The translations under genes were made by a program, and so were the position numbers. From the NCBI GenBank assembly GCA_002269645.1, contig NIVC01000872.1, positions 1-64,000 of the forward strand: 64,000 nt of DNA, in the 5' to 3' direction. Below, piece after piece: positions 30 to 50,500 of this stretch. Position 1 is the stretch's first letter. Each line of letters opens with the position of its first letter. This DNA is from Macrostomum lignano. Taxonomy: Eukaryota. The notes under the pieces were generated by a model. That model had not been told where the DNA came from. It was given only the letters and a program-made list of their open reading frames with translations, and searched no databases.

Positions 30-1429
30 TTAAACGGGATACTTCTCTTCAGCTGAAGGAAGAGAGCAGTTTGTCGGGTGATCCTCGCATGATAATTCAT
101 GCTCTGTTAGCTTTTCAAAGCGTTCAGGTCCACTGTAATGCTTAAGGCACAAGCGGCAGATGGCAACAGCCTCGTGATGATTATTCAACTGCTTGTGAAT
201 GAGTCTTGAAAGATCTTTAATCCAAACATAGTGAGCCTCCTCTAGTAAATTACCAATCACTAGAAGATCCACTTCAGTCCGCCTTTTCCCTCGGATCTAA
301 AACGTCTTTGCTACATCTGACCGGTTGAACTTTCTCAGTTTTTTCACTCCACTCAAAGACTGTGATTCTAATTTTGTTATTAAAACACTTCTTCTAGCTT
401 TGGGATCTGAGAGATCGCCAGGCCTCCTTTGTCAAACCTGATTCCCTTCTTTTCGCATTCAATGAGATAGTAGTTGAAATAATTTTGATAATTTGAGGTT
501 CTTTCGGGGTGGTGAGGTACACTAAAAAGTGCAGAAAGAACTGCCCATAGAGCACAGCAATTGTCTTTATTTTTAACATTTATGCAAGCTTTTTTACCGG
601 CTAGCTTATGCGGGAGCTCTATATAAGAGGAGGCTTTAAGTGGGTCATATTTCATGACCATGACAGTCGCTCTTTGATCCCTCCCACGACCCACCCGGAA
701 CCTCTGGATGTAAACGCTTCAAATTTTCTTATTGACATCTTGAAGGAAAGGATCCAGTGTGTCTGTTGGGGTGAATGGCTTTGCCTTTGTTGTCATGTAA
801 TACTCGAGATGCTCAGTGGGTTTCGCAGGCATATAAAACGCAATCTTGAATGATATCTGTAGTTTAAAAGTCTTGCGTGTTTTGAGTGTGTGATCAACAA
901 CTGATTGGATGCTGTCTTTATAGTCGTAGATGTTTGCGGTGGTACCGTTGGTGCCGTTTATTGGGATTGTGTACTCTATGTAATGTTCTGTAAACTTCGT
1001 CTGTGCAAAATTAATCTCTTCAGTGGCAAGCTCCGACTCTTTTAAATGGATTAATTGCTCTAATTTCTCTTGTTCCTGCTTATTTTGTGGGTACTTTGCT
1101 TTTTCACCAGTGAGAGTTTCATATTTGTTAACTAAGTTGCGACTCCTCTCTTGGTGTTCCTTTGCAGAATTTTTATAGGCGCATACTGGTTTGATTCTAA
1201 TTGATTGATGATTTCCAACTGTTTTCATAGCTTCCCAGGTGACCAGGGTCGGTGTTGAACTTTTGTTTGCATGCTTCTCTAGTGAATTACTTTTGTCTTG
1301 AAATGAGACGCCTTGTAAGGTTGTAGGGTAGGGTAAATGAGACGAAAAATATTTGTTGACTAAATCTCTTGCTGGATTGGCTTTTGGCATTTTTCTCGAA
1401 AATATAAAAAAAATTTTGAGGGTGACCAC
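30..1429 (-). pseudogene. N-terminal region of a Polinton/adintovirus-type protein-primed DNA polymerase B gene, in three frameshifted pieces (719-1429, 380-694, 30-272)
   Basis: FTSRGSGW (restored across the ~715 frameshift), KYDPLKASSYIELP..KKACINVKNKDNCCALWAVLSAL and HYVWIKDLSRL...CRLCL..H...C motifs are typical of this region. Confidence 0.8.
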
Positions 1430-1513
1430 CCTGATAGAAAAGTTGAACTGTTTCTACATCCTATAAGTAGCGTTAGGTTTATGAAGCTGGATAACGTGGG
1501 GTTTAAAACCTCA

Positions 1514-1960
1514 TCACATACGCATTATTGTAAACCCAGCATTGTGCAATGTCATGATGGCTTTGACAATGTCAGACTTGCTTACAGAATTTTCATGCTC
1601 ACAATCATCAGGATCAGGGCAGCCCTCTCCTGCCTTAATTGTTATACCTTTGTCTCTTGCAATCTTTTGCAATTCTAGCTGGTGGGCTCTATCATTCCCA
1701 GCTTTAACAGCAGTTGCTACACCTCCAGCTACACCACCTGCGGCACTTACAGCGCCTGCAATGATCGGAATAAGAGCTGCTAATGGTAGGATTCCTCCTG
1801 ACTTTTCATCTGTGATGCTGTGTCTTTGTTCATTACACTGAACTATTTGCTGCGTGGGATCGATTTTTACTTTGATACCTTTAATTGATATAAGACCTGG
1901 TTTCTTTGATTCAATGATTTTATTGAGTTTATTGATGGTTCTGGTTTCAATCTTTGTCAT
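1514..1960 (-). CDS. Small Polinton/adintovirus protein with an amphipathic Gly/Ala-rich helix (protein X / cupiennin-like, putative membrane-active virion protein)
   Basis: 148-aa open ORF containing GGILPLAALIPIIAGAVSAAGGVAGGVATAVKA, located between the integrase and PolB genes. Confidence 0.65.
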   Translation of the reverse strand: MTKIETRTINKLNKIIESKKPGLISIKGIKVKIDPTQQIVQCNEQRHSITDEKSGGILPLAALIPIIAGAVSAAGGVAGGVATAVKAGNDRAHQLELQKIARDKGITIKAGEGCPDPDDCEHENSVSKSDIVKAIMTLHNAGFTIMRM

Positions 1961-2005
1961 TTTTTATTTTAATATTTTAATTAATTTCTGTGTCAGCTGG
2001 TATCA

Positions 2006-3012
2006 CTAGGAGTTCAGCTCTAGTGAATGACCGTGTGGGGATTTAGGGTTAAAGGCCTGAGATAAAAAGTAATAGTCACCGGAGTCGGAGGTAAAATGTC
2101 TGTCTATTTTATGTACATCAAGGCTGAAGTATGGATCTGTAGCTCTTCTTTTGGTGTCTTTCTCTAGCTCTCCAGGTAGATATAAAAAGCGTAGAAACTC
2201 AGAGTTTGTCAGTATGTATGGTGATTCAACTCCTGGAAGCTTAGGGTAGTTCGAGGTGTGCTTTGTGTTGTGTGTGTTGTGTGGGGTTGTCGTGTTGTTG
2301 TCTGTTTTATGAGATGACTTAAGTTCGACAGTGTCTTGTTTAATTGCATGGGACGGTTTCAATCCAGTCATGCGTGTGACTTCATTGTTCAGTTGTTCTA
2401 TAACAGTGGGGAGCCGGTCTGTCCACTTGGTGTAGTATTGGCCACTTTTTAGTTTCAGCTCTTCAGCTGTCTGCTTAGTGAATAGCCTCTTGGCTAGAGT
2501 TAGATTGAATCTTTCCACAAAAGCCTGATCTCTGTGGAGCTCAGTTCTGCCATAGCGAATCTCTGTATTTTTCTTTTCCATAAGTGATTTCACTGCACCC
2601 ATGAATTCTTTACCAGGGTCTGTCATAAAGATTTCAGGGTAACTAAGGGTGAGTTTTTATAAATATCTTGGAGGGCGGCTGCAACTGCTTCTGACTTCTT
2701 CGTCTTGAGTGGGCGAGCTTCCTTATATCTGGAAGCAACGTCTGTAATTGTAAGAGCATACTTGTAGCCCGAGTCATTGGGGAGAAACAGAAGATCTGCT
2801 TGGTGCGCCTCATTAGGTTTATAAATACTGAAATGGGGCCTTTCAAATTTTACTGGTGGGAAATAGATTTGAAAGACAGCCTGCTTAGAGAGCCATTTTT
2901 CTACTGTAGCTTTTGGTTCCTTACTCAGCTCCATGAGTTTACTAACGGCATTTTTGCCTACAAAGAATCCTTTGTCGCTGTAGTAGAGTTTTTTAAGTTT
3001 CTGATCTGTCAT
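2006..3012 (-). pseudogene. Retroviral-like (rve) integrase of Polinton type, 1-nt frameshift at ~2645
   Basis: HQADLLFL..YKYALTITDVASRY (D1), MTDPGKEF (D2) and AFVERFNLTL (E) are split over ORFs 2623-3012 and 2006-2626. Confidence 0.9.
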
Positions 3013-3042
3013 TTATTTAAAAAGAAAATTTTAAATAAAATA

Positions 3043-3528
3043 ATGCAGCGCTCTGGTGGTAAAATAGATTCACATGGACTGATAGAAAAGCTTCCTCATC
3101 CAAACAAAGGCTGGACACTTCCCGGCTATAAATATTGCGGGCCTTTGAATCCACTTGAAATACAGTTAGATAAAAACAATAATCCACATCCTGGGCATGA
3201 GCCTGTGAACGAGCTAGACTCTGTCTGCATGTGGCACGATGTTAAATATAGAGATTTTCCTGAGGAGAAGAATCGCTGGGACAAAGAAATGCTTAAGAGA
3301 CTAGACAATATAGGGGCTTCAAGCGGGTGGAAGGAATCGATCGCTCGGAAGCTAGTTAAAGCTGTTATTTTTGGTAAGACAAAATTGGGGTTGGGAATTA
3401 ACGCCGAGGGTGGGTGTTTGGGAAGAGAGGTGGGCTTTATATTGCACGCGCCACGTAAAGAACTTGGAAGACTGCTGAAAGAGCTGGGGTTGAGAGAGCA
3501 GAATGATTCAAGTGGCTCTAGCGGTTGA
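3043..3528 (+). CDS. Parvovirus VP1u-type phospholipase A2 domain protein (PLA2X-like)
   Basis: LPGYKYCGPLN Ca-binding loop and EPVNELDSVCMWHDVKY catalytic HD motif. ATG at 3043 follows an AT-rich leader. Confidence 0.85.
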   Translation: MQRSGGKIDSHGLIEKLPHPNKGWTLPGYKYCGPLNPLEIQLDKNNNPHPGHEPVNELDSVCMWHDVKYRDFPEEKNRWDKEMLKRLDNIGASSGWKESIARKLVKAVIFGKTKLGLGINAEGGCLGREVGFILHAPRKELGRLLKELGLREQNDSSGSSG

Positions 3529-3649
3529 AAAGAAAGCTTGTAAAGGCGGCTATATTTTCCTTATGACATTTTGCCGCGTGGTGGTTGGGTGTTGAGCGGA
3601 ACGGATATGGCAGCTGTTTCTTGTCAACCATTATCCTATACTCAATGTG

Positions 3650-3870
3650 CCGCAGATACTGCAGTATTCAATGTGAAAAGTATTCAATGTGAAAAGCAGC
3701 AGATACTGCAGTATTCAGTGTGAAAAGTATTCAATGTGAAAAGCAGCAGATACTGCAGTATTCAATGTGAAAAGTATTCAATGTGAAAAGCAGCAGATAC
3801 TGCAGTATTCAATGTGAAAAGTATTCAATGTGAAAAGCAGCAGATACTGCAGTATTCAGTGTGAAAAGTT
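3650..3870. repeat. 47-bp tandem repeat, ~4.7 copies, between convergent viral ORFs
   Basis: Unit gcagatactgcagtattcaatgtgaaaagtattcaatgtgaaaagca read directly. Confidence 0.95.
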
Positions 3871-3927
3871 TTTTATGTGAAAAAGCAAGAGTCATAGCAG
3901 CAAGAGTCATTAGTCACAGCAGATTAG

Positions 3928-4566
3928 TTAACCCAGGAGTGCACTGGCCTCTTCTTCTTCTTCTAGCATCTTCAATGCCTCATCGGCATACTTAATTATT
4001 GAGCGCAGTCGATACAGCGAGATGCCACAACGATTTAGAATAGGGCGAGTGTTGCTGAGTCTTGCCACCCGAATTAAGAAATTCCCCCAAACCGGCTTAA
4101 ATCGAAGCTTCATGGCAAACGCTCTATATTCCTCAGCAGACAGTACGAGCTTCATGCGGATCAGAATTTTTCCAGCCTTTATTCCGTATTGAAGTCCTTG
4201 ATTTTGTAGTTCATTTATCATTTTGTCAATTTTGTTGAGCTCATTCACAACATCTGCAATGTCATGCCTCCCAGAGACAAATTCCACAGCCGGTTGTGGA
4301 ATGACACGAGCAAGTGAATCACGGAGTAAGTTCGCAGCCTCATTGATGTGCTCCAACTTCTTTCGTTCGTCAATTCCTTCCACCCTACCAGTGATAGATG
4401 GTAGATTAATCACACACTTATTGAATCGCCTCGCAACTTTGTTAAATTCCTCAATCCAATACTTCGATTGCTTCATGTCATCACTCTCGCACATCCTCCT
4501 TACTAGAGCAACCAAATCATCCTCAAATGTAGGCATTGCTATGTCCATTGAAATTCTAAAACACAT
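3928..4566 (-). CDS. Hypothetical helical protein, probably Polinton accessory ORF
   Basis: 212-aa intronless open ORF with protein-like composition and no recognised motif. Confidence 0.55.
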   Translation of the reverse strand: MCFRISMDIAMPTFEDDLVALVRRMCESDDMKQSKYWIEEFNKVARRFNKCVINLPSITGRVEGIDERKKLEHINEAANLLRDSLARVIPQPAVEFVSGRHDIADVVNELNKIDKMINELQNQGLQYGIKAGKILIRMKLVLSAEEYRAFAMKLRFKPVWGNFLIRVARLSNTRPILNRCGISLYRLRSIIKYADEALKMLEEEEEASALLG

Positions 4567-5299
4567 TGTAGGTGAAGTAAATGAAAAAAAGCAGAACTAG
4601 TATAAGCAAATATATTAATAATTATTACCTTGCAGATTAAAAAAATATTTAGCGCGTATATGGATACTGAATCGGGAATCAGTAGTTCTTTAGTAGGTAG
4701 AGCTCTGCTCAATACTAAGCTCTACTTTAAGATATGGCTCTAGAAATTTTTCTCAGTGTATTATACAATAGATACAGTAGCTTCCGCGCGATCGACACTG
4801 ACACGGTAACGTTGTTATCCCTGGGGCGGCGAATGTGGCAGCAGCTGGTGGAACCGGTTAAAGACACAATACGCTCTCGTATACCCAGTAAGTATAAATC
4901 TATATTAACCCTGGAAGAACTCTGCCCTATACGATTTGCTGTACACGAAATGAGCGGGAGGAAAATCTATAGTTTACAACTCCAAGTCCAAGAGGCAAGG
5001 GCGTTCTAGCTTCTATTGTGCTACAATTGAGGCACTGGCAAGCAAGAGAGGGAGAGAGGGACGGGACGGGAGCCATGGACGGGAACGGACGGGGCTGCTA
5101 GAGTCTGGCAAGCGGGCAGAATTATGGGGCTATTGCCATATACGATTTGCTGTACACGAAATGAGCGGGAGGAAAATCAATATTCTTCTGGATCCGAATA
5201 ATAGGAAATTCTCGGCCGGATAGCCCTGCACACTCAGTGTCTGCTCTTTCCTCCTTATTTCCTCCTGTTTTATGTAAATATACTTGTGAATAAATGAAC

Positions 5300-5560
5300 T
5301 TAGTCTGTTTTTTTAGTAAGCTTCAACTGCCTAATGATTTCTGCAAAGTTATAGTAGCTGTCGTAATCTGTTACGTAGGTTACTCCATACTTATGAAACC
5401 AATGTCTTTGGAGAGCTTGATTAATATTAGGGACATTGATATCAACATCGGGCCAATATTTTCTCATGTACTCGCTGCATTCTAGTTTGCATCGGTACTT
5501 GGATTTGTACAATGGATGAGGCTGAGTATAATAGGAACCTGGAGAGACAACTGGAAACAT
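5300..5560 (-). CDS. Small Tyr-rich hypothetical protein, probably Polinton accessory ORF
   Basis: 86-aa ORF with an AATAAAAATG start context like the other viral genes. Confidence 0.45.
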   Translation of the reverse strand: MFPVVSPGSYYTQPHPLYKSKYRCKLECSEYMRKYWPDVDINVPNINQALQRHWFHKYGVTYVTDYDSYYNFAEIIRQLKLTKKTD

Positions 5561-5769
5561 TTTTATTGAGAATTTAATTTTTTTAAAGGGTGAGGACCCT
5601 GCGCTGATGATTTAAAGTCTTAGGGATCTGGTAGCACGTTGCGAATTGAATGTGGGGAGAAGAATGCAGATTATTTTTCTGATTGTTTTAGAAATGTTAT
5701 GGGTGGATTTGGAGCTGTTATGCTCAGAGCATAAACCCTCAGAGCATAACAGTAGGACACCTGTTATGC

Positions 5770-5985
5770 TCTGATTCTGTCAGGGATAATATGGATGGAT
5801 TTAATGGGATTATGGAGGATGTTTTGTGAGCGAGTGCGACCCCCTTTTTTTCTGATTCTGTCAGGGATAATATGGATGGATTTAATGGGATTATGGACGA
5901 AGTTTTTGGAGCAGGTGCGACCCCCCTTTTTTTCTGATTCTGTCAGGGATAATATGGATGGATTTAATGGGATTATGGAGGAGGT
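5770..5985. repeat. ~81-82-bp tandem repeat, ~2.6 copies
   Basis: tctgattctgtcagggataatatggatgg recurs at 5770, 5851 and 5933. Confidence 0.9.
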
Positions 5986-6742
5986 GAAAAATTTTGTCCC
6001 AGAAGCCCCCTCATGCCTTCTACTGATGCTTGCAGTTTCGTACCTTTTTTTCATTTATTAGTAACTGAGGACAGTGCAGTTGAGCGCCGTTGAGCGCCGT
6101 TACATCAGAGTGAAGATAAAAGCAGAGTGAATATAGCACCGTTTGGTAGCTATAGCAGCAGATGAACAATCTAGCAGGCCAAATCTGCCAGCCAACAAAC
6201 GGAGAACATATCGAAACCTAAGTACTTTAATATGACATTATTACGCGTTACATTTGTGCAATTATGTTTTCTTTTAACTATTCGTATCCATCCTATCTCA
6301 TTATTGACTTTTATGCATTTCCCAGTAAGCAAATTCCACCTCTTGTTACTTAACTTGTTTTTTACGAAAACGTGTGCTTCCGTTTTATTACAGATCCCGA
6401 TTGCATTGCCTTGCATTCATTTCATTGAACTATCTAGTCATGGTTTCTATTGCAAAAATTCAAGTGTCACCGTTCATCCGCCCATATGTTAGAACAATCG
6501 TATGTAGTAACAATCAGTATCACTAATCAATCAATCACAATCAATAATCAGTAGTAGTAGCAGAAGTCATTGATCCCCTCATTTTAAGTAGGATACCGTA
6601 GTGATCTAGAATAGCTACCCACGTCTATATAGAGTTGACACATTCATCTAAACCTATTGCATACATGAATGTCATGTAGTTCCTCCGATTATTATTATTA
6701 TACCGTTTCGTTACAGAACAGTCGAAATCTGACTTCTCCAGG

Positions 6743-9407
6743 ATGGACAAGGCCGGCACCTCAGCACAGTCTGCAGGGCCGGAACAGACGGACGAAACGC
6801 ACAATGCAACGCACTATATGAGAAATTGGCGGCTTGGCATACGTAAAAGGGCCGCACCCGCATTGACTGGCCAGCAGAGAATGCAAGCATTACGGCAACG
6901 TCGATTACGCGACAAACGCGCGAATCTGGCAGATCTGCCATCAAACACTCTGGTCCCTAGCCTCAATGAGGAGGGCAGCGACGCATCCGACCAGAGCGAC
7001 CCAGCCAGTCTCAACGAAGAGGGTAGCGACGCATCCGACCAGATCGACCCAGCCAGCCTCAATGAGGAGGGCAGCGACGCATCCGACCAGAGCGACCCAG
7101 CCAGTCTCAACGAAGAGGGTAGCGACGCATCCGACCAGATCGACCCAGCCAGCCTCAATGAGGAGGGCAGCGACGCATCCGACCAGAGCGATCCAGCCAG
7201 TTCGAGAGCTGATCCTATTTTCATAGACAGACCATTTCATAAAATAGCCGAAGCGGATGTGCTTCTAACGACAGGAGAAGCGGCCACATTAATTGCGGAC
7301 TACTGCTCCAAGTGGAAAGCATGCAGAGAGCAGAAAAGAGAACTACTAGGTTTATTACGCAAACTGATGCCTAGCGCTGATGTGCCGCGGTCGCCGCATG
7401 TACTTTCTGAGGTTGTGAAAGCTCGCTTTCGACAAGAATGCAGATCTGCATTACCGACCTCAGAATGCTACACTGTGTGTGCGAAGTGTAGACAAAATCG
7501 ACTCGGTCGAAACGCGCCGACGTGTTCAACTTGCGGTAGCGAAGAAGTTGCAAGCTTCTGGCTATGTGACGCAAAGGATCAACTTCGGCGCTGCATCCGA
7601 CGCGGAATGCTGGAGACTGTTGTGTGGCCGGCTGATCAACCGTCAGACGACATGTTTAGACGTCAGTTACACTACGTCAACAGTGCACTGTACAGGGAGT
7701 TCCTAGCGTCGATTGAACCTCGACGTAGATGCGATCTGTCGTACACGCTATGTTCAGACGGATTTTCGTTGCGGAAAAGCAGTAACGTCGAGGTCTGTCC
7801 AGTGTACATGTCTGTAACAGAGGTGTACGAACGCATGAAGTATAAGTACGTGATTGTATGCGGAGTCTGGGCTGGACACGTTAAATTGCATGCGGAAAGT
7901 TTCCTACCAATATGTAGACGGACACGGCGATAAGCAAATCCTTAGATTGCACCCTTTCCAGGCCATCTTCGATGCCCCAGCACGAGCGGATGCACTAGGT
8001 ATGAAGCGATTCAACGCGATATACGGATGCGAAAAATGTTATATTCGAACAAAAAAACAGCCGTTTGGATCCGGACGTATGTTTCCGCTCGAAATCACCA
8101 ACGCTATGCTGAACGCCGCTGTCAGACGTGGGTGTACACAGACAGAGTTTCGGTGCGTCACCGACACTAACATGCTTGCCGATCGGCACGAATATGAAAG
8201 AGACAGAATGCGCGTGGCTCGTACTGACGACAAGACAGACACGCTTGGAGTGCGAGCCAAGTCTCCACTGAGTGAACTGGCCGGGTTCGACTACATTAGG
8301 GGTTGCCCGCCGTGTTATTTGCACCAAACCTGTGCTGGTCTGACCGGCTATCTGATGTACCAGTTGTTCCTAATACGACATCAAAAGCCAGACCAGACGT
8401 CGAGAAACCCCGATTTGTACCGACGGATTAGCCTGATTGATGAACGGCTCGCAAGAATTCGAGTGCCGCGTAGTGTTCAGAGACGCGGACCAAGGTCACT
8501 AAACCTATTGAAGAGGTATCGGGGCCACGAGTTTGAAATGTGGATGTTAGCTTACGGTCCGATGGTACTGGAAGATTTCCTTGCATGCTATGATCACGGC
8601 AGGTACTATCAGCTACTGCTGGCTCTATCGTCCGCAATGTTCGCATTGTCATGCGTTGGTTCCTCGATCCGCGAGCTGACACATGTGCGAACGACATTAT
8701 CGTACTTCCATCGCCTACTCCCGATGATGTTCTCGAATCGGGCATTGACTTATAACGCTCATCAGGTATGCGTGCATACCCTGATGCACGCAGTGTTGGC
8801 AGGGCCAATACACCAGTTATCAGCATCGCTGTTCGAGTCATTTCATTGTAGTATTCGTAAACGCATACGCGGTTCGCGAGCGACCGACGTAGAAATAGCG
8901 AACGTCATCCAAACTGAGCTATTAGTGGCACAATTGGCGGACAAGACAACTGAAGATCTTCAGTTGACTGACACGCCAGTAGCCAGACGCATGACAACGA
9001 AGAACATCAGGTGTGGCACAGTTTCACGACCTAGAAGATATGCTGGAAACCCGAGTAAATGGGAGCGAGTTACATTGCATGACGGCACAATGATCGATGT
9101 GTTCAGACAATCTATGTCACAGAAAAGAGTTGTCTCCAGCTTTGTTGCCGTCTGGACTGACGCTGGTCGGTCAGCGATAGACTTTGGTCGCGTCTACGAA
9201 TTGGAAGAGGATGAGGATGTAGGCGATCTACATCTACTGATGCAACCGCTCCGTCTGGCCGCACCGATGGAGGATCCTCTATCAGTGCTCGTGGCCGTTC
9301 CGGTTGATGCGCCAAATCGAGGTTGCCGACTCATCCACGTCCGGAAGCTGGCTTGCGATCCCTTCGGTGACATTGGCGGCTATGTTATTGTGTTCCTATC
9401 AAAATGA
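6743..9407 (+). pseudogene. CMC/EnSpm DDE transposase, one frameshift at ~7905 (ORFs 6743-7933 and 7854-9407)
   Basis: Zn-ribbon CAKC..CSTC, then CSDGF (D), FDAPARA..MKRFNAIYGCEKC (D + C(2)C), YLH, and GPIHQLSASLFES (E): the CMC signature order. Confidence 0.85.
6959..7202 (+). repeat. In-frame 48-bp x5 coding repeat (SLNEEGSDASDQ[S/I]DPA) with 96-bp higher-order alternation
   Basis: Visible in the ORF translation and in the DNA. Confidence 0.95.
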
Positions 9408-10248
9408 TTGTGGGATCATGTGCTGTCAGCGACACGCATGTAGTAGCGCTGCCGCATGCGCAACTATCTTTTTCGTGAATTTGCTCGGGCCTATACGCCT
9501 GTGTGCTCCTTGTACTGTCCAAGCCCATTGTAATGTATTGACGTTGCTTAATAAGTTCGCGGAAAAGACAATTTTAAGTAAGCTGTCACCTCAAACGTTT
9601 GTTTGCGTATACCCCACAATTTGTACGAACTGATTAAGCAGTCTTTGTAACGTCAAGTATAGTACCGCTCATTGCTGAGATAAAATCTGTTCCACTGTAT
9701 GTTGCCACCCTATTTATAAACGCCTTCAACTTTATCTATGAACGTTATAAGACTCATTCACGCAGGCATTAAATAAGGCGAAGGTTCACAAGTTTACACG
9801 ATCTTTACACCAATGGTCATTCGTTTATACACCAGTATACTTCCACAACCACTATGACGACAATGTGAATGAATCTTAATCACTTTAAATATGTATGAAA
9901 TCTGCCGTTTTAATTTTTTCATTAAAATGAATCATAACGGACCTCGTATCATACACCAATCAGTAAATATGCGCAATTCACGCATTTTGCGTCCATCATT
10001 ACACTATGTCTCGTGTTTCGTGATTGCAACGTTGCATCGAACCTAGCATGTAGTTCACCACATCGATTGGTTGGCCGTCCACTCTCCCTATAACGAAATT
10101 CCTTAGATCTAACTTTAGCGTGTACGTAAGATTTTGTGGAAATTAGGATCGTATCTTGAGAGCGTCCTTTTCTATTCTTAAACATTGTACAATGCGATAT
10201 TTGAAGTAAATATGCTGTTAAAAATCGTTTTCCAGTCGTCTGCTTGAT

Positions 10249-11901
10249 TTGGAAAGTAATGGGCAAGAAGAACTGCGTTACTCACTTACAAGAGGACGAA
10301 ATCCAGTGGATATAGACGCAGAACAAGCCGAAAAGCGACCGCGCAAGGGTGTACGACCAAACGACCAATCGACAGTCCCGAAAGCTTCGTCGGAAATTCA
10401 GTCGGAAATATTCGATGGGTCCGACAGCGCGAGGTCAACAAAGAAGAAGAACCGCCAAAATAAAAGTGCAAGTGCAGAATGTGCCCCTGACGGAATGCGC
10501 GGTTACAAATCTGCAGATTCGTCCGCGTGGGCGGTCATTTACGACAGCAACAACGACAGAGGTGCGATACTTAGCACCGATATTGTTGCTCTTGACGATC
10601 GTCATGAGCAACCCACTGTTGGTTGTCGCATTGTCGTCGTGACAGCCAAAACAAAGACTGCCTCGGCCGCAAGATATGGCGCCACTATATGGAGTGGACC
10701 CTACAGTAGCATTGCTGCTGCGCAACGCGTCGCATCCGCGTCGGGCCCGTTGCAAACTAATAGTGCGCCGAATCCTTGTGGTTCGTGTTGTGCACTAACC
10801 AACCAATTGCGCTCGCATGTTTCCATTGTGGACGAGCAACGTGCGTAACTATTGGTTTACTGCGTAATTTCAATATATTTGTATGTAATACGTAGTCAAT
10901 AAATTATTCTATAAGAGCAACTCTATATATTTATCTGAACGCACTTCATCACAGGTGATCGCATTCGGGCTCTGGAAAATGAAATTGAAAATGAGAGGGA
11001 ACGTTCGGCACATCTGGCGCAAAGTAACACACAGTTGTTGAACGAAGTTGATCAACTTCGCGCTCAACTGCATTCGCTTGAAGAACAAATGGCGCAGAAC
11101 GGGAACACTGACTCCAGTCGAGACGCCAAAATGCAGCAGGTTATGAGCGTGGTTGAGCGCCGGTGTGAGCGACTACTCAGTGCAGTACATGCTGCCAGAT
11201 GCACAATCGGAGGCTCTGATAGTGTCGACGCAGAGTATGCCGATCGGCAAGACGAAACTGGTCCCATTTTAATCGATGACGAACCTCGAGAAGTTGGTAT
11301 ATATGCCCACAGCCATTGGTCCACTGACCAGTCGGCGCAAATGAAGCAGACTATGGGTGCTGTGCAGGCTGCCGACGCTATTGTTTCAATGCGGCCACGT
11401 GAAGTCAACCCAAGCGCATTGGTTCGCCTGTCAAACGACAACGGCTTTAGGAGAATACTAGTAGAGCCGAAAGACAAGCGCGAAATCGAGCAGCGAACGG
11501 AAGCCATTCATCAACTGGCATCGGCCGATCGGCCAGATGCAAAAAAATTGGCTACCGCTAATGGCTCATTTATACGAGCGGTCCTTCGCGCTTTATTCAG
11601 CGAGGACCAGTTTTTGCGGGAGACTTGCTCGGGTCGCGTCAAGGGTCAAGTAGGTGGCCAGCGATGTGACGACGGCAAGCTAGCCGTGGCTATGGCATAC
11701 GCCAAGCACGTTGGCGTAAACATAGACGAAAAGGAGTTTCGGCGTCAGCACTATCAGTGCCGCGAGACGGCCATAAAACGCAGGCAGACTCCGGAAGAAA
11801 AGGCTAAAAAATCCGACGCTGTTAAAAGATGGCGCGCCGCTAAGAAGACACAGCTGGCCGGCACAGCCGAGGAAGCCGTCGAGGGAGCCGCCGAACCTTA
11901 G
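10249..11901 (+). CDS. Coiled-coil + C-terminal BEN-like domain protein; intron 10841-10954; true start not resolved
   Basis: A GT..AG intron joins EQR|DRIRALENEIE in frame. The C-terminal SFIRAVLRALFSEDQFLRETCSGRVKG...DDGKLAVA resembles the BEN domain pattern. Confidence 0.6.
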
Positions 11902-12969
11902 GCTGACTGTCGGCGTTGAGTAGTTTTATAGGATAACGGATCATAACGGATTAATACTATAAATTGTTTTCGCACAATGAACTTACTGTTTTTGTTTGTT
12001 TTTTTACACAGTACTTCGTCCCATAGCAGATCTGCTATTTTAATTCAGGACGATAATCGTTTGAAATTTCGTCCGGCATTTTGCCATTCATCTTTGTGTG
12101 CTTCATATTTCAGTTTTCCAGTTTTTTTCTGTTCAACGTTTACGGTTTACTGTTTCATGTTCAGTGCGACTTGCGATTTGAAGTAGGCGTGCACTTAGAA
12201 AGGCCAGACACAACTTCTTGTCGCGAAAAATGATCCAGGAGTCCGTACTTATACGTGGGAATTCTAATTGCCCCAATGCACGTAATACTGTGTAACTCTA
12301 TTATACCTTGGGAACTAGAACCATATTCGGTGCACCTACTTGACTTAATGAAGGCATGAGTTCTCTAAGAAAGTACGTAATGTTGTGTGACTCAGTATCT
12401 ATTTTTATAACACGAATTCATCTCCTACAGTACTAGGAGGGCCCTCGGGCACGTGTTTCCCCCGTAAACATGGATCAACGAGTGCAGCACGTACGTCAGT
12501 TTCATCTACAACGTCCACATACGTTAACAGTACTAATAATATTCTAAAGTATTACTTATAACACATACAGCTTTTCCAATCTTTTTCCTAGCTGCTTTTT
12601 TAATGTCTTTATTGTCGTGCTTTTTGGCACCACTATAAATGAAAAATACTGAACATTTTTATTACGTCTTTTAAGTCATTTCATACGTACTGTCTTGCCG
12701 AGATTCCGAAAAAGTGGTAGTGCGAGTTCTAGGGGACGACCCGTTTTGATTTAAATCAATTGCTAGAGGTCTGGACTCTGTCCCAACAGACTTGTGTCTG
12801 GGTGCCGAGTTAGTTGTATTATATGCGGAGTTATGTTAAGTCAATGGTAATAACAAATACCCATGCAACGTCCTTTCAATCCTGTCTCCCATCTCATGAT
12901 CGCTGGTGTCCGACGCTGTTTTCGGGCCACGCCGTCTCACCGAACAACCTCCACTTCTCTCTGTTACAG

Positions 12970-14459
12970 ATGTCCAGCGCTTCAAATCGCACGGTTGGTC
13001 CATTAAGCACGCTGCGACTGAGTACCGACGACGCAAAGTATGCGTTTTCGGAGTCCATATGGAATACACCTGCTTGGAGAAACGCCATCGGCGACATCGG
13101 GATCGAATTGTGCACGAAGCTGTCAGAGTTCTGTACTGTCGGCCACATTCGCGACTCAACGAACAGGATTCCGATATTGTTGCTACTTATTCAACGAGTT
13201 ACCGACCAGCAGATCTGCTCAGCGTCATCCTCGTCGGCTTTTACAATTGATGCATGCGACCCAACCGGGATGATTGGTTGCAGTGTCCAAGGCAGCGTAC
13301 GCTCGCAGATTGGGCCGTTGCGTCGTGGCGATGTTATTCTGTTGCGCCGACCGACAATTTTTGCACCGCCCGGTCGTCCAGACAAACGCTCTGTCAATAT
13401 TGTACCTAGTAACATCCTACACGTATATACGGGATGCACATACGTACGTATAACCTGTTTTACTTTTTATCGAACTAACTGACCTTAACGAAACCAGCCG
13501 CTATATACAACTAATTCTGTAGATTGTCGACTGCACGACACCTCGCTGTCCGCGTTGCCGTAGACAAGCATGCGGCGGCTGCAGCACGGGCAGCTACTTG
13601 CGTCAAGAGGTAGTACGACTGGAACTATTTCTGGCTGATTTGCCAGTGGAACCAGTAGGTCGTACCAGCGGAACTGCTGGCGTAGTTCCATCCTATATCG
13701 CTGCTCCCTGCGGCTCGCTAATGTCTGTCTGGTGGGCTGGCTTTAATACACCGCCGATCGGCGGCAATCAAGTAACATCTTTCCCTCGCGCAGCCGGGAT
13801 TTCGTGGACGCAACTGCACGAGGACCCCATCGCAACGCAAGCGGATACTTCAGATGGCACGCCATTCACTTCGTCTCCAGTCTACGAGCAGTCGTTCAAC
13901 GAAAGCCACTTGTTTCCAGAGGGTGTCACTGCTTCGAACGACGCAGTTGATGACGCCGTTGGACGATCGTCCATCACACTAGCGACATCTGCAACGCCAA
14001 GTCGGTTGGATATTACCGTTGGCACACGGGATTGCAAAGACAATCAGGTAAGAGCTGTTTCCAGTGCAGTCGGCATTTCGTGGACGCAACTGCACAACGA
14101 AGCCATCGCCGCGCAAGCCGGCGCATCAGATGGCACGACATTCACTTCGTCTCCGGTCTACGAGCAGCCGATCAACGAAAGCCAGTTGTTTCCGGATGAC
14201 GACTATGCTACGAATGAAACTTCTATCGACACAGCTGACGCTACTTGTGAACGGTCGTATAATATGGCAATGCCTGTCGGCACACCGTCACTGTCTGTTA
14301 GAGCTAGACAATCGAGAGTGTATGTACCTTACTGTGTTTTTTATAGCTGTGTATATGTCGGAGAAACTGTCATCCATCGCCATTCAATTTAACTTAATAC
14401 TACAGAGTCGTTCCATTGCGCCGACATATAATGCAAGTCCCCGTCGGCGGTCTCATTAA
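12970..14459 (+). CDS. HROB: HROB/C17orf53-like OB-fold (DUF4539) protein with Cys cluster and duplicated Ser/Thr-rich tail; exons ~12970-13443, 13523-~14320, ~14407-14459; upstream exon(s) possible
   Basis: W-anchor, RIPILLLLIQRV, DPTGMIGCSV, LRRGDVILLRRPTIFAP and VNIVPSNILHVY align by eye with the HROB motifs as recalled (KVPNMAVMIKSL, DPTGEMQGTV, LKPGSVLLLKQIGVFSP, LNVTPNNLVHIY). The phase-0 intron 13444-13522 joins in frame to ORF 13598-14392. The symbol marks homology, not proven orthology. Confidence 0.75.
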
Positions 14460-14822
14460 TCGCCGTCCGCGGGCGCGACCCGGTCTTTCAAACGTCTGGC
14501 TCACGCGTCGACTGCCGCCAGAGTCGCGTCCGAGTACAGCAGGTCCGAGCTCGCCAGCTGATACACCAGGTCGCAGCAGATCACCAATCCAGTAATATCA
14601 ATTGGTATCCACAGTATAAGTAGATCTACTTATAACTGGACTCCCGAAACTCAGACTTATGCCACACTGTTCTCCAGATGTTTTCGTTCATGTTGAGATG
14701 CCGTTTAGTTGACACCCCGCTGTTAAATAGATGCTTCTCACAACATCTTGAAGCACCAACTTTTTATACGCTTCTTTACTGCGAAATTTGATTGTCGGTG
14801 CCTTCTGCCTTTTATTATCATA

Positions 14823-15370
14823 AATTACCCGACTGTTATCTGATCAGGAAATCTTGTTTGATGCCAGACAGGATAACAAACAAGATAACAAACAGCATAA
14901 CACGATGTTTCCCTGCAGGATTCGCATGAATTACCCGACTGTTACCTGGTCAGCGAATCCTGTTTGCCAGACAGGATAACAAACAAGATAACAAACAGCA
15001 TAACACGATGTTTCCCTGCAGGATTCGCATGAATTACCCGACTGTACCTGGTCAGCGAATCCTGTTTGCCAGACAGGATAACAAACAAGATAACAAACAG
15101 GATAACACGATGTTTCCCTGCAGGATTCGCATGAATTACCCGACTGTTACCTGGTCAGCGAATCCTGTTTGCCAGACAGGATAACAAACAAGATAACAAA
15201 CAGCATAACACGATGTTTCCCTGCAGGATTCGCATGAATTACCCGACTGTTACCTGGTCAACGAGTCCTGTTTGCCAGACAGGATAACAAACAAGATAAC
15301 AAACAGGATAACACGATGTTTCCCTGCAGGATTCGCATGAATTACCCGACTGTTATCTGGTCAGCAAATC
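14823..15370. repeat. 103-bp tandem repeat, ~5.3 copies, rich in (G/C)ATAAC(A) sub-motifs; probable CACTA subterminal array
   Basis: aattacccgactg starts at 14823, 14929, 15032, 15134, 15237 and 15340. Confidence 0.95.
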
Positions 15371-15740
15371 CTTTTTGAATCTTGTTTGAAACAAGGAAAC
15401 GTAAGATTTCGTCACGCAAACAAGATTCATACAAGATAACATTTTGCATAACCGGAATAGGGCATGTTATCTTGTTTGAGCGAATGTTATCTTGTGGTGT
15501 TATCTGGTTTATTTACCAGAGGGCAAGCAAGGCCAGGCTAGCCACGGCCAGAGCATGCCCAGTATTGGCTGCAGGAATGGCTTGGCCATAGACTAAAAAA
15601 TGGAATATCAAAATGAGAATAAGACGCTCAATATGAGACTGAGTGTGAAAGCCTTCAGATATCGCTCTAACCCTCCGACCCTCAGCCAGCTCTCCTTCTT
15701 CACCCCTTGGGTTGCATCTGACCCCTTGGATTTCACTGTG

Positions 15741-16050
15741 ATGGCACCATCGATTCCTGCAGCAAACCGTCAGCGTCTGATCGACGCAGTAAACAATGGA
15801 TCAACCATCCTAGCTGCCGCTCAAATTCCCAAGATCAAGAGAGCGTCCGCCTTTAGGATCGCTGCGGAGTTCCGCCTCCATGGCAGAGTTGAATCCCTAC
15901 CTCGTGGCGGTCGGAGAGAAGAAAATTGCAAGGCTGACAACGAGATGAGAGACTTCCTGACTGAGACGCTGGAGGAAAATCCCTTCCTCACACTCAAGGA
16001 AATGTCCTCACGTCTGGCTACGCAGTTTCCGGAAAAACCCACCGACCAGG
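15741..16050 (+). mobile_element. Tc1/IS630-family transposase N-terminal HTH fragment (truncated)
   Basis: RQRLIDAVNNGSTILAAAQIPKIKRASAFRI..E.R..GRVESLPRGG...EENPFLTLKEM. No DDD/E domain follows. Confidence 0.65.
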
Positions 16051-16145
16051 CCCACGGGGGATCCATCCCCATATCCCCCCTTGCCTACGCCGCTGATAAG
16101 TACCAATGTTACAGTAATATGTTTGATTGTTTAGAGGTAAGTAAG

Positions 16146-16149
<4 letters not shown>

Positions 16150-16229
<80 letters not shown>
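16150..16229. repeat. (CT)40 microsatellite
   Basis: Direct read. Confidence 0.99.
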
Positions 16230-16234
<5 letters not shown>

Positions 16235-17857
16235 AAAATTTTATCCATGTGGACTCTTCATCGGACTATTGACAGATGGATTGATACAAACATGAGCCCA
16301 CTATAATTTCATGTACCTGTAAAACTGTACTCTGTAAATATTAAATGTTTTTCTCTGATATACATTACCTTTTTATCTGTTTATCAACATGCCGGGTGAT
16401 TGCAGGATCTCGAATCATTTTCTTTGACTAAACAAAGAAGACGAAGATAAATTGTCAATTTTAGTCTCTAGAATAGAAATCATAATACTGTGTTAAATTT
16501 ACGCGTTGACTCATGACAGATACAATTCCTTTTGCTGCATCATCTGACTAGAAAATAAAACAATAGTGAGACGTCCGGGGGCTACGTCGACTGCTTCTTG
16601 CTTCTTTGAATCACGCCTTTTTAAATCTGTTTAATCATCACGCGGAGTGATTCCAGAATATCGAATTCCTTTGTTTGACTAAACAATTGTCCAAAAAAGT
16701 CCTAGACTTAGACAATAGTCCTACACTTGTACGCGTGAACTCATGAGAGGCGCAAAATATTCTACTGTTTCATGATCTGGATTGCAGGTAAAACAATGGT
16801 GAGAAGTCAGGAGGTTACGTTGACTGCTTCTTAGAACACCCTCAGTAAGCCAAGCAGAAAAAGCAGTAGGCAAGTAAATGCGTGTAGCGTGTATAATGCT
16901 TAGTAAGGACAAGCCAAGGACAGGAAGGAAGACTTGAAGAGCCTCGGAGACCAATAATATGGGAGAGAGCTAGAGTCCTCTTTTCCCTCCTCATTTCCCC
17001 CAAAATTCCAGAAGCAACCAATGTTGATTTTTTCCTAGCCCTTCCAAGGCTTGGTAAAGTCATCAGATAAAGGCATTACGATGGGGGACAAGAAAAGTGC
17101 AACTTTTTAGAAAGTGCCTCTTTCTACTAGTGCAGAGAGGGCTTGTTGCAGCAATTGGCTTTAAAAAAGAGAAGCATGAATACGAAGTTCAGCTGCCACA
17201 GTCAGAAAGAACAATTATAAAAAAAAGCCCTAATTTAATTGCAATGAACTTAGTTTAGTTTGATTTTAAAATCTGTGTAGGACTTCATAATGCCGATTTT
17301 AGGAATTTCAAACTTCTTGTTCGATTCCGCCACATTAATTTGGTGGTGGTTAACGGGAAATTGACCGGGGTATTGTGCGATTCTCGCCAATGAGGACCAA
17401 CCCGCAAGGTGCAGAGAGTGTAAATGCCTGACACTCCTGAGTGCGTGCCCGCGTACAGTATTGGTGCGCTTGTAAGTGCTGCCTCAGAACTGCCTCATCG
17501 CTGGTCTGTGGGACAATGTCTCCGAAGTTGCTGCGTCAATATTTTTATATTTTATGACATTGTTTGATTACTTTGCACTAATTAATACCGTGAGGGAAGG
17601 AGTAAACTTTGCTTAAACAGTTGGAATTTTGCTAGAATTCCCATTTTGTTTCTACGAGTATGTTATTGAGTCATTAAATATAATACTTTACCCACTGCAG
17701 TAAGGCTTTTAGAATTCGAAACTTGATCCGAGATGCGAGTACCCTAGCTGTTAAAATTTATCATACAAATTTTGTATTAATATACTATGAGAGTTCCAAA
17801 CTACACTTAAACAGGAAGCGAATATCGTAGAAAGGTAGGTTAACCTTAGTTTAATAA

Positions 17858-18971: not shown

Positions 18972-21900
18972 ATGGAATCAATAAGTTTCGGATTGTTCAT
19001 TCTTCTGGTCTGTTGCTGTGTTTGCTTCGATGCTGCTCAAGGTAAGTCAATTGATCTGCATAATAGTGGATTCTGTATTATCCGTCCAAGTCAAAGGGTC
19101 TGCAATATTTTCCACCTAAAATTGGTAGATGGCTTCGGGTCAGAGTGGAAGGACAGAAAAAAGATGAGAGATGAGACGCGACAAACAGGATGAGAGTAGA
19201 GAAAAGGCGAGAAGAGGTGGGAGAGAGGGGAGAGAGGAGAAAAGGGGGAGAGAGGAGAGAGGCGAGAGAGAGAGAGAGACTCTCTACCCGACGGGACGGA
19301 TAGAGAGAGGCTTCACGGGCTGCATGCGGCCCTCGGGCCGGAGTTTGCCGACCCCTACTCTAAGTGAACGTTAGCGGTGTCAGTGACTCCGGCTGACAAG
19401 TTAAGCATCAGCGCCAAGTCGTGCGGCCTACACAACTGGTGCAGACGGTGCTACTAACAGGCATCCTGCCTGCAAGGAGAGGCAGAGACCAGGAGATTAC
19501 ATAAGTACAGCTTTTTTAACGCTCTACAATTGCTTTGCAGGATCCTGCAATCCTGCTCGCTACACGCAGCACAATGGTGTCCTTACGATCAACTCCGGAG
19601 TCAGTAGCCAAGTCAGTAACATCTCTGGAGTGGAATCCCTGCAGGGGTGCCTGACTCTGTGCCGGGTGAGGGACTGCGTTGCTCTCGAGTACCGACAGAG
19701 CAGCGGTCTTTGCCGGCTGGTGACTGTCTCAAAAGGATCTAGCGAGTCCAGAGTCCTGGGGACAGAGCCTGGCTCTGAAGTTTTCAAGCTGAAGAATTTC
19801 GACTCTGTGATTAATTCGATATTAAGCACCAACATCACTCTTCTCTTCACAAGTAAGCCTTGCTTTTCGTAATAAAAGCATTTTGTAACCATAGTTAGGT
19901 AGAAATTAATTTGACAACAAATTTCAGACACCAGCACTGGTCAGAACGGCAGCATACAGCAGACAACGATAAACGTGACTGGCTGTTATCGAATTGAGAT
20001 TGCCGGAGCCAAGGGTGGTAGCAACTTTGACAGAGAAAAATATGGCGGTAGGGGAGCCCTGGTCGCTGGAAATGTCAGCCTGACGGCCGGCAGCGTGCTG
20101 TCCATTGTCGTTGGTCAGGCTGGTGGCCACGCGATATCCGGTTATGTTGGAGGTGGCGGCGGCGGTGGAAGTTTTGTGTACCGTGTATCGGACAGTGAGC
20201 CGCTCATGGCGGCTGGCGGTGGCGGCGGAGCCTCCAGAAGCGAACATGGTTCGTTGAACTGAAGTTTCCTTTTAAATACTGACTGCTCGTACCGTAACAT
20301 GTGATTAGAAAGAAGTTTCCAGAATAGCTTACTTTAATTAAATCAATTTGTAGGCACAATTTTCGACTCGATACTCAACATCAGAGCACTTTAGAGTTGA
20401 ATTTTAAAAGAACATCTACATACGCTTCTACAACTTTAAACACTCGTTTAGCTTCGAAGTTGCTAGCTTGTATGGGTGAAAAACCATCTCCAGAGTAGAT
20501 TGACAAGAAAAAATTAAATTATATTTTGCCAAGTTCTATTCAGGTAGTCCTTGTATGGACCTAGTCTGTTAAATTTATAGTGTTGTGACGTCGGAGCGCA
20601 TAATGGTACTATAAAAAGCCTAAAGTGTTAGGTCCTCTGAAAAATGTTAAACACCATTTTTTCAGGACGCCAGGGTGAGGCCGGAAGAAATGGTTCAGAC
20701 TCACGTGGCTCAAACACGGTAATTTTATGACAATTAGTTTTGGTAATACTCGATGATAATTAATAAGTTTTGATGCTCAACGTCTTTTGATAAACCTGAG
20801 AACAAGCTTTTTAATTAAGTGTATCACTCTAGATTAGAAAGATACCTTAAAAGTCAACTCTAAAGCTGGATTCACAGTCATTGCGATTCGGAAAGTTTTT
20901 TTCACTAAGTACCTTCTTTAAAATGTTCAAAATAGAACAGAAACAATCAGAATAAACCGTATCAGGACCTGGATTGAGTCAAATATTGACACGGTTGTGA
21001 AGTCCATAAAGTACTTTTATTTCTGCCAAATTTTGAGTTCGTTCCAAAACAATAATTTTTAAACAGTTTTTAAACCCGATTTTGCATTCGCATATTTTAG
21101 TCATTCTTTTTGTCATTCCGCACTTATTCGTCTCACGGACTAAAATAAGATATGAGTTCCTTCTGGCTTCACACTATTTGTATTTATGCATTTAGTAGTA
21201 TTTTAGTAGTAGAAAGGGTTTTTGCTAATTTTCAAATGAATTTAGCTCGTACCTTGTGACTATTGAAGACCACTAGCTTAGTGTAGTTTTGGTTGTAGTT
21301 ATAGTACTTAACTGGCTCCATAAATACTATAGAGCAAAGATAAAAGTTTAAGTGCAAAGTTAAAAGTGCCCCTACTATTCTTAGCATTTCTTGATATTCT
21401 TATCACAGTAAAAATTGCAAAAAATTTAATCTTACAAATAATTATAACGATAATTATAACGAATATTATGGTCTACTATTACAAAGAATATAAGGAAGTA
21501 TATACGGTAAAAAAATCAACAGAGTATGTTTGATATCTCGACTGTTTTATTAAAACAACGAGTGGTATTTTTTACTCACGACACAACCCAACTGTTTTAT
21601 ACAGCCCTCTGAGATCGGCATAGGAGGCATCAATGGACAACCGGGCAGTAATTATCCGTCTAATGCGCCCTCAGGCGAAAATTACGGTGGCTGCGGCGCC
21701 GGCTGGAAGGGTAGAGCAGCCGTTGCGAACAGTAACGAACATGGTGGCGGAGGTGGTAGCAAAAATGAAAATTGGATTGGCGGCTCCTCCAGCCAAGGTT
21801 CTTCCTACGGCTTGGGCGGCTTCGGTGGCGGCGGAGGAGCTGCTACCGGCGACGGTAGTACCAAAGGTGGCGGCGGAGCTGGCGGCGGCTACAGTGGAGG

Positions 21901-22054
21901 CGGAGCCGGACTGAGAGAAGATTTTTCTGGCGGAGGCGGCGGCTCCTTCTGTGGCGGTAGCGGCTGCGTGGCCACCACTGGCGGCAACACGAACAGTACC
22001 CAAGGATTTGTTAAGATTATGTTTGATTCTGTTATCCATTACACATGCGCTTGA
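18972..22054 (+). CDS. Paralog A (intact, 401 aa): signal peptide + PAN/Apple domain + ALK/LTK-type glycine-rich domain; exons 18972-19041, 19541-19852, 19928-20248, 20666-20718, 21605-22054
   Basis: All introns are GT..AG and phase-consistent (1206 nt). CLTLC..DC..LCRL PAN cysteines; YRIEIAGAKGG, LSIVVGQAGG, GGGGGSFV, LMAAGGGGG, GGFGGGG, GGGYSGG, GGGGSF and GFVKI motifs of the glycine-rich domain. No TM or kinase exon was seen downstream. Confidence 0.9.
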
Positions 22055-49960: not shown

Positions 49961-50500
49961 TTCACCACTAGGGCTCTGTTCCAAATGAAGCCGTCGAAGG
50001 AGATGGCCGGTCTCACAATGGCAGTGTACATCTACCAGAGGCGACGGGGGTGAGGCCCTGTCAACCTGTGGTCGAGGGTGACGCCCAAACATCTGGTTTG
50101 TTTTCCGCGATAACAGGTTTGCGATATAGTGAGAGCGGGTCAATTATCCAGTTTCGGCGGCTGGTGAACATGATAGCCACGGTTTTAGACTCAGAGAACC
50201 TGAGACCGCAGCTGTGTGCCCAGCGCTCGGCACAGTGGATGAAGTCTTGGATGATGTCTCTGAGGACCGCGAGTGATGGTCCAGTCACAGTGGCGGTAAC
50301 ATCGTCCGCATGCGACCTTTTGATCGGGGTCCGGATGCGGGCTGCAGAACAGCTCGTCCATGACCAAGTTTCAGATATCGGGCTGAGGACTCCACCTTGT
50401 GGTCCGCCTTTCTGGACCTCCACAGAGCGGAAGTGTCCTAGGAGGTGCGAGTTGACAGTACAATTGAAGACCAATTTTTTATCCAGCGGATAAGGTGCCC
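49960..50500 (-). mobile_element. R1/LOA/I-like LINE reverse-transcriptase fragment
   Basis: KGGPQGGVLSP, HADDV and WAHSCGLRFSESKT..IMF motifs. Confidence 0.8.

Follow-up and report, generated by a model that had tools for sequence, protein, structure and literature searches.

HROB/MCM8IP both recruits the MCM8-9 helicase and activates it, and long-tract gene conversion depends on the protein and is specifically impaired when it is lost (PMC6771392, PMC7290032; the loss phenotype in PMC7290032). In the human protein, the OB fold binds MCM9 via F553, is essential to helicase stimulation, and is dispensable in single-stranded DNA (ssDNA) binding, while MCM8 is bound by residues 362 to 440 (including 396 to 413), immediately N-terminal to the OB fold (PMC11055865). 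Canonical HROB is described as ∼80% disordered, with N-terminal RPA1-binding motifs and an OB fold near the C terminus (PMC7290032, PMC11055865). The supplementary data of Huang 2020 list MCM8, MCM9, and MCM8IP/HROB as present in Platyhelminthes, with HROB in Schistosoma. Host-derived genes carried by transposons include the RPA-like genes of Helitrons, which were acquired independently by lineage and are missing from related elements (PMC4683698), and the genes captured by Pack-TYPE elements, which have been described in plants, are nonautonomous, and have no transposase gene (PMC6379663, PMC8903248). Here we describe a 64,000-nucleotide stretch of repeat-rich eukaryotic DNA (Macrostomum lignano contig NIVC01000872.1, positions 1 to 64,000; called the window below) in which a gene encoding an HROB-type OB fold, here named the OB gene, stands among the genes of a CACTA-like transposon. 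Our tentative explanation is a lineage-specific capture of the OB exon of HROB by this transposon, seen in one decaying copy. No paper linking HROB or DUF4539 to a transposon was found in the literature searched, and a first-pass annotation of the window likewise knew of no such cargo.

An HROB-type OB fold encoded in the window

The OB gene and the spacer in front of it are made up as follows.

11902-12969, + strand: noncoding spacer of 1.07 kb, 41% GC, with no tandem array and no motif cluster
12970-13443, + strand: OB gene exon 1, 158 amino acids (aa) with no stops; HROB/DUF4539 OB fold at residues 66 to 154
13444-13522, + strand: putative OB gene intron of 79 nucleotides (nt), GTACGT...ctgtag, with an in-frame stop at 13480; read from the sequence
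13523-14392, + strand: OB gene exon 2, 289 codons plus stop; Cys cluster, then a Ser/Thr/acidic region

The 158-aa exon 1 product matched Pfam PF15072 (HROB, formerly DUF4539) with an E value of 2.1e-9 and 37.6 bits, above the gathering cut-off of 30.8 bits, and the alignment ran over profile positions 2 to 83 of 85 (about 83/85 covered). Apart from PF15072, no Pfam family matched it at an E value of ≤1. Longer read-through versions of the open reading frame (ORF) gave the same match at 36.6 and 37.4 bits, while five shuffles and the reversal of the exon 1 sequence gave no HROB match at an E value of ≤10. Because these controls were negative and the longer ORFs still match, we conclude that the match is real and specific, which bears out the HROB/DUF4539 assignment of the first-pass annotation. 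Searches with single sequences found no relatives: a word-indexed homolog search with exon 1 returned 28 candidates, none of them significant, no PDB sequence matched at an E value of ≤10, and a HMMER (phmmer) scan of 1.84 billion representative proteins with the 447-aa model described below left the OB part unmatched. No pairwise match between the OB protein and HROB proteins in that set reached an E value of ≤0.001. Therefore, the OB domain is a distant member of the HROB family that is detectable by profile only. A single-sequence AlphaFold model of the OB region had a confidence (pLDDT) of 33, which is too low for use.

The ATG at 12970 lies immediately 3′ of an acceptor-like ctctctgttacag. 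The exon 1 frame stays open 5′ as far as 12814, and the 1 kb 5′ of exon 1 shows no coding exon. A donor, GTACGT, begins at 13444, just past the OB domain, and 13522 is the last base of an acceptor, ...ttctgtag. Downstream, the frame is open precisely from 13523, contains no early ATG, and stops at 14390-14392. This splice would join exon 1 to 13523-14392 in frame to give a 447-aa product consisting of an N-terminal OB module, a Cys cluster (C-x4-C-x2-C-x4-C-x2-C), and a repetitive Ser/Thr/acidic tail. We infer the splice from its consensus sites and the exactly placed frame and consider it plausible, as the first-pass annotation had in proposing a spliced ORF. Read-through to a stop ending at 13482 is a possible alternative gene model, and an open segment in the same frame at about 14438 to 14620 is a possible third exon. 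The exons are 50 to 55% GC, compared to ∼41% in the neighboring noncoding DNA, and the intron is AT rich; this profile separates coding from noncoding DNA only and reveals no element boundary.

Exon 2 contains an in-frame internal duplication (13766-13939 versus 14042-14215, 80% nt identity). Over 58 codons, the ratio of nonsynonymous to synonymous substitution (dN/dS) between the duplicates is 0.48, a weak indication that the region is coding. Both duplicates carry the acidic/aromatic motif SSPVYEQ(S/P)(F/I)NES(H/Q)LFP(E/D), which is kept in the M. lignano fragments described below and could be a short protein-interaction motif.

Two transposon genes upstream of the OB gene

The OB gene follows two genes on the same strand, a transposase gene and a second gene.

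6743-9478, + strand: transposase gene with two frame breaks, located by tblastn with P0001; it ends with the C-terminal residues and stop of the intact homolog
10236-11901, + strand: second transposon gene, in a TnpA-like position; its homologous parts are found on L001, and its splice is read from the sequence

This layout bears out the first-pass annotation in that the OB gene has the orientation of the transposase and second genes and lies behind them, but its description of the genes as tightly packed does not fit the 1.07-kb gap that separates the OB gene from the second gene. The only database relative of the transposase is P0001, an intact protein of 863 aa encoded on L001, a 10.2-kb Tara Oceans contig (ERZ976238 k127_1411745); the two transposases are 46% identical. 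ORFs 6743-7933 and 7854-9407 of the window are two pieces of one transposase. A tblastn search with P0001 produced three high-scoring segment pairs in two frames of the window (6743-7912 in frame 2, ∼7911-9388 in frame 3, and 9392-9478 in frame 2). Since these segments switch frame twice, the window transposase has two frame breaks, for which mutations or assembly errors would account. Neither the window transposase nor P0001 matched a Pfam family at threshold, including Transposase_21/Tnp2. A subthreshold DUF4218 match was found in the homologous place in both proteins (E values of 0.014 and 0.073, 13 to 16 bits against a cut-off of 27). The transposase alignment recovered no related locus from the JGI metagenomes or IMG/VR. 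The transposase N terminus contains an in-frame tandem repeat at 6959-7201 (96 bp ×2.5, or 48 bp ×5) that encodes SLNEEGSDASDQ(S/I)DPA and is absent from the L001 homolog.

The second gene consists of exons at about 10236-10846 and 10955-11901, corresponding to ORFs 10249-10848 and 11035-11901, and an intron at 10847-10954 (GTGCGT...cacag). Its parts are 27 to 29% identical to L001 positions 7509-8237 and 8575-9342, with their order kept. The second gene proteins of the window and of L001 matched no Pfam family and showed no BEN domain at an E value of ≤1, so that the earlier label "BEN-like" is not retained. A single-sequence AlphaFold model of the C-terminal part was all helical, with a pLDDT of 47, too low for use.

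The first visible exon of the second gene begins after an acceptor, ttttccag, that ends at 10235, and has no ATG; its start codon probably lies in an upstream exon that was not found. The acceptor-like heptamer GTTACAG occurs at 6716 and 12969, 5′ of the transposase ATG (6743) and the OB gene ATG (12970). The heptamer before two ATGs, together with the ATG-less second-gene exon at an acceptor, suggests a polycistronic element transcript with a shared leader exon or spliced-leader trans-splicing.

A complete relative with two genes

L001 carries a complete, apparently intact element of 9.9 kb with two genes at positions 97-10041, whose terminal inverted repeat (TIR) starts CCCGCTGAAAAAATCGTCCGG.

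97-130 and 10008-10041: TIR of 33/34 nt, CCCGCTGAAAAAATCGTCCGGTTTTT(G/C)GTCCGG, beginning CCCGCTG
178-656: left subterminal array, 153 bp ×3.1
9685-9961: right subterminal array, 111 bp ×2.5, 80 bp from the right TIR

The subterminal arrays at both ends contain CCGG. The flanks, AAT and CCT, differ, and a 3-bp target site duplication (TSD) of AAA/AAA fits only with four unpaired bases added per terminus. Because both genes are conserved together on L001, the transposase and the second gene of the window are genuine genes of a transposon. L001 has 340 bp from the second gene to the right array, and the window has 2.9 kb; the window copy thus carries an extra ∼2.6 to 2.9 kb there, with the two-exon (possibly three-exon) OB gene. 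L001 provides a clean reference for an animal transposase family that is undescribed or poorly modeled and unrecognized by current Pfam.

Ends of the window element

Three regions of the window were considered as element ends.

14819-15377, + strand: presumed right subterminal array, 103 bp ×5.4, built of ACAGGATAACA, ACAAGATAACA, and ACAGCATAACA motifs
15378-15499, + strand: terminal region with the same 11-nt motif in both orientations; candidate right terminus ...TGTTATCTTGTGGTG at 15499
5715-5979, no strand: possible but unproven left-end region, with hairpin copies of AGCATAACA at 5716-5770 and an 81-bp ×2.6 array at 5770-5979

Motifs of the ACAAGATAACA type had 18 matches in the window, compared to 1.2 expected, and 17 of the 18 lay within 14868-15508. 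The candidate right terminus at 15485-15499 is CACCACAAGATAACA when read as the reverse complement of ...TGTTATCTTGTGGTG. This combination of array and motif cluster has the layout of the L001 right end, and the 1.07-kb spacer in front of the OB exon has no element-end features. We infer that the 103-bp array is the right end of the element, which would put the OB gene inside it. The statement in the first-pass annotation that the gene lies upstream of subterminal repeats therefore stands (the 103-bp ×5.4 array and its motif cluster), but its candidate TIR does not form a pair, with CACCACAAGATAACA left unpaired in the window.

On the left, the 9-mer AGCATAACA is confined to 5716-5770 and the right array. 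We rejected it as proof of a left end; chance alone should give a 103-bp unit and 1 kb of sequence one 9-mer in common. Alignment of 5.5 to 6.1 kb with the right end, in either orientation, yielded no significant or TIR-type local alignment.

The 3′ part of the OB gene recurs in Macrostomum lignano

The scan with the 447-aa model produced three matches, all to the tail and all in Macrostomum lignano.

13922-14602, + strand: dispersed repeat segment, comprising the 3′ part of the OB gene and adjoining DNA; 72 to 78% aa identity to M. lignano pieces

This segment recurs in three M. lignano gene models, one of them annotated as LAMTOR5. Because the copies sit inside gene models with unrelated flanks, they are taken to be exonized transposon fragments. 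These copies contain frame shifts. Their recurrence also indicates a macrostomid flatworm as the host of the element.

Origin of the OB gene

Under the explanation that we tentatively prefer, the window contains one decaying copy of a cut-and-paste DNA transposon of roughly 9 to 10 kb, in which the OB-fold exon of a host HROB gene would have been captured (transduplication) and fused to element sequence. The captured exon 1 would encode the whole OB-fold module of the HROB/MCM8IP family, with its ATG directly after a gttacag acceptor that matches the one preceding the transposase ATG. Such a capture would fit the domain match and the position of the gene behind two element genes and in front of the L001-like array.

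Several observations weigh against this explanation. CACCACAAGATAACA has no inverted partner anywhere in the window, no cluster of GTTATC or ACAAGATAACA was found outside 14.8 to 15.5 kb when a left motif cluster was sought, and no left TIR or TSD was found in the window. Because the left TIR, the left motif cluster, and a TSD were not found in the window, the element boundaries are not proven. The earlier placement of the OB gene inside a transposon consequently holds insofar as the gene lies between element genes and an L001-like right array, and fails for the left TIR and TSD; we consider it fairly likely that the gene is within the element boundaries. No second copy was found in the window by blastn or tblastx, and the OB protein recovered no related locus and no second copy from the JGI metagenomes. 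No second OB gene-carrying copy was found among the 1.84 billion proteins either. L001 has no OB or HROB ORF anywhere, and the OB gene is therefore not an attribute or a family-wide accessory of this transposon family. The sole known copy that carries the OB gene has a broken transposase, and since that transposase is broken twice, the intact OB frame may reflect a young copy only. None of the M. lignano fragments takes in the transposase, the second gene, or any of the OB exon; because they cover the 3′ part only, this part is possibly an independent short repeat. Finally, a flatworm host HROB exists, and since flatworms have HROB, there is both a host source for a captured exon and a host gene that the OB exon could belong to.

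Such a host gene is a less likely explanation, in which the OB exon would be the 3′ part of a flatworm HROB ortholog, a right-truncated element would lie in an upstream intron or alongside, and the 3′ repeat and 103-bp array would be unrelated repeat debris. It is consistent with the presence of MCM8, MCM9, and MCM8IP/HROB in Platyhelminthes, as given in the Huang 2020 supplementary data, with the start of the OB exon at a splice acceptor in a frame open upstream to 12814, with the lack of an enclosing TIR pair or TSD, and with a complete relative that lacks the OB gene. The read-through protein would also end 16 aa past the OB fold, in keeping with the near-C-terminal position of this fold in canonical HROB. 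However, element-end features are absent before the OB exon, and the L001-like array and motif cluster follow just after the gene; the predicted acceptor coincides exactly with the start of the downstream open frame, which continues for 289 codons; and the upstream 1 kb shows no coding exon. Furthermore, the OB part is unmatched by any M. lignano or other protein among the 1.84 billion, which is unexpected for a conserved host gene. A nested element, with the OB gene as part of a smaller repeat inserted between the second gene and the right array, is very improbable. It would explain why 13922-14602 recurs in M. lignano while the transposase and second gene do not, and the OB gene lies between the arms of an imperfect inverted repeat of 25 nt (12380-12404 and 14725-14746). 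We treat this inverted repeat as chance and rejected it as a pair of element ends, given that 11 of 300 shuffles reached its score; moreover, it has no TSD, the 2.4 kb contains no transposase or other mobility gene, and the recurring part leaves out the OB exon.

The OB gene could also be a maintained accessory, which we regard as improbable; its product would engage host MCM8-9 (or ssDNA) where the element has been excised and thereby let long-tract homologous repair reinstate the 10-kb element at the donor site. In its favor, the OB gene is co-oriented with the element genes, its frame is intact over two exons, its ATG follows a gttacag acceptor like that upstream of the transposase ATG, and the exon 2 duplicates keep their frame with a dN/dS of 0.48. 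What is known of HROB is also compatible with such a role, as its loss specifically impairs long-tract gene conversion (PMC7290032), its OB fold is the MCM9-binding module (PMC11055865), and Helitron RPA-like genes provide a precedent (PMC4683698). On the other hand, the closest complete, apparently intact relative does without the gene, the single known copy has a transposase that is broken twice, the MCM8-binding region is not visible, the dN/dS comes from 58 codons, and frame shifts are present in the 3′-part copies of M. lignano.

Possible function and significance

The visible OB gene exons encode the OB module only, and the MCM8- and RPA-binding regions are not visible. If it acts at all, the OB protein would be an isolated HROB OB module that could serve at most as an MCM9 tether or competitor. 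Because the MCM8-binding stretch is not visible next to that module, activation of MCM8-9 as by HROB is not expected, and by analogy with the human OB fold, a role in ssDNA binding is less likely than the first-pass annotation had assumed. Nothing shows that the OB gene helps the transposon, and a role in repair is a proposal only.

A cut-and-paste element increases in copy number only if the template used to repair the excision gap still carries the element. For a 10-kb element, gap repair needs long-tract synthesis, the step that the HROB-MCM8-9 pathway supports. If the proposal were true, MCM8-9 would be brought to the gap or diverted, and long-tract repair would copy the 10-kb element back into the donor site, making the OB protein a transposon-encoded manipulator of repair-pathway choice. 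This would be the first eukaryotic DDE element that encodes a homologous-recombination factor and would offer a handle on repair choice at excision sites. The case for such cargo is much weaker because there is one broken copy and the complete relative lacks the gene. That an animal transposon family maintains the MCM9-binding OB module of HROB, spliced from the element, and steers MCM8-9 at the excision gap is likewise improbable.

Other features of the window

Additional ORFs and repeats lie outside the transposon genes described above.

2800-3528, + strand: ORF with a parvovirus-VP1-type phospholipase A2 (PLA2) domain (PF08398, 52 bits, cut-off 23.9), overlapping a minus-strand integrase fragment (rve, 2623-3012)
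15600-16295, + strand: ORF with a Tc1/mariner-like N-terminal helix-turn-helix (HTH_32, subthreshold), ∼100 bp past the candidate right terminus; it runs into a (CT)40 microsatellite at 16150-16229
19975-22054 (+), 32034-33200 (+), 37621-38835 (-), and 42996-43412 (-): at least four paralogs, either genes or fragments of genes, with an ALK/LTK-type glycine-rich domain
44979-46549, + strand: ORF with a THAP zinc finger (subthreshold, 20 bits), followed by more co-oriented ORFs
50061-50513, - strand: reverse-transcriptase fragment

The PLA2 ORF may derive from an endogenous virus of the parvovirus or densovirus type, or its PLA2 may be carried by a transposon. The ALK/LTK-type domain (PF12810) scored 38 bits at 32034-32522, and the paralogs form a local gene family in both orientations. 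The THAP ORF may be a remnant of a P-element/THAP9-like transposon.

Comparison with known systems

The element has a CACTA-like architecture, with a large transposase, a two-exon co-oriented second gene, and short-motif arrays near the ends. The first-pass annotation had assigned it to CACTA/EnSpm, and of that assignment the layout of two genes and arrays stands; for the family label there is a subthreshold DUF4218 match, and the L001 TIR begins CCCGCTG. We regard the label as a reasonable lead rather than a result. CACTA elements characteristically have subterminal motif arrays and a TnpA-like gene; L001 has an array at each end, the window element has one at its presumed right end, and the second gene is conserved in both. 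A TIR that begins CACTA or CACTG is not found in either, given CCCGCTG in L001 and an unpaired CACCACAAGATAACA in the window. The candidate terminus CACCACAAGATAA of the window element resembles the En/Spm TIR, CACTACAAGAAAA. As in En/Spm, where the TnpD transposase is accompanied by TnpA binding subterminal repeats, the window has a large transposase, a second co-oriented gene, and subterminal short-motif arrays in both orientations, along with a subthreshold DUF4218-type region. It differs from En/Spm in the lack of a Transposase_21/Tnp2 profile match, in the 33-nt TIR of L001 starting CCCGCTG, and in its animal host.

Compared to HROB itself, the OB module matches the PF15072 profile above the curated cut-off, and the ∼65 residues before the Pfam match could equal part of the larger human OB domain at 446 to 580 (PMC11055865). 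The architecture is not that of HROB, since the OB fold occupies residues 66 to 154 of 447 and is followed by a repetitive tail of ∼290 aa; only the read-through model, with its stop at 13482, places the OB fold C-terminally as in HROB. Furthermore, canonical HROB is a single-copy host gene, whereas the OB gene stands among transposon genes.

Helitron RPA-like genes likewise encode a transposon-borne, host-derived OB-fold protein of replication and repair (PMC4683698). Helitrons, however, are rolling-circle elements with RepHel, in which an ssDNA binder has an obvious role, whereas the element here would be a DDE-type cut-and-paste transposon, and its OB fold belongs to the HROB type, whose human representative contacts MCM9 and not DNA. 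Pack-CACTA and other Pack-TYPE elements likewise hold a host exon with its acceptor between CACTA-like ends in a lineage-specific manner (PMC6379663, PMC8903248), the right end being presumed in our case. Unlike Pack-TYPE elements, the carrier in the window keeps both element genes, with the transposase broken. Capture of this kind is documented mostly in plants, and the locus is likely a case of host gene capture by a CACTA-like element in an animal. By these comparisons, its closest known analogs are the RPA-like genes of Helitrons and gene capture by Pack-CACTA elements.

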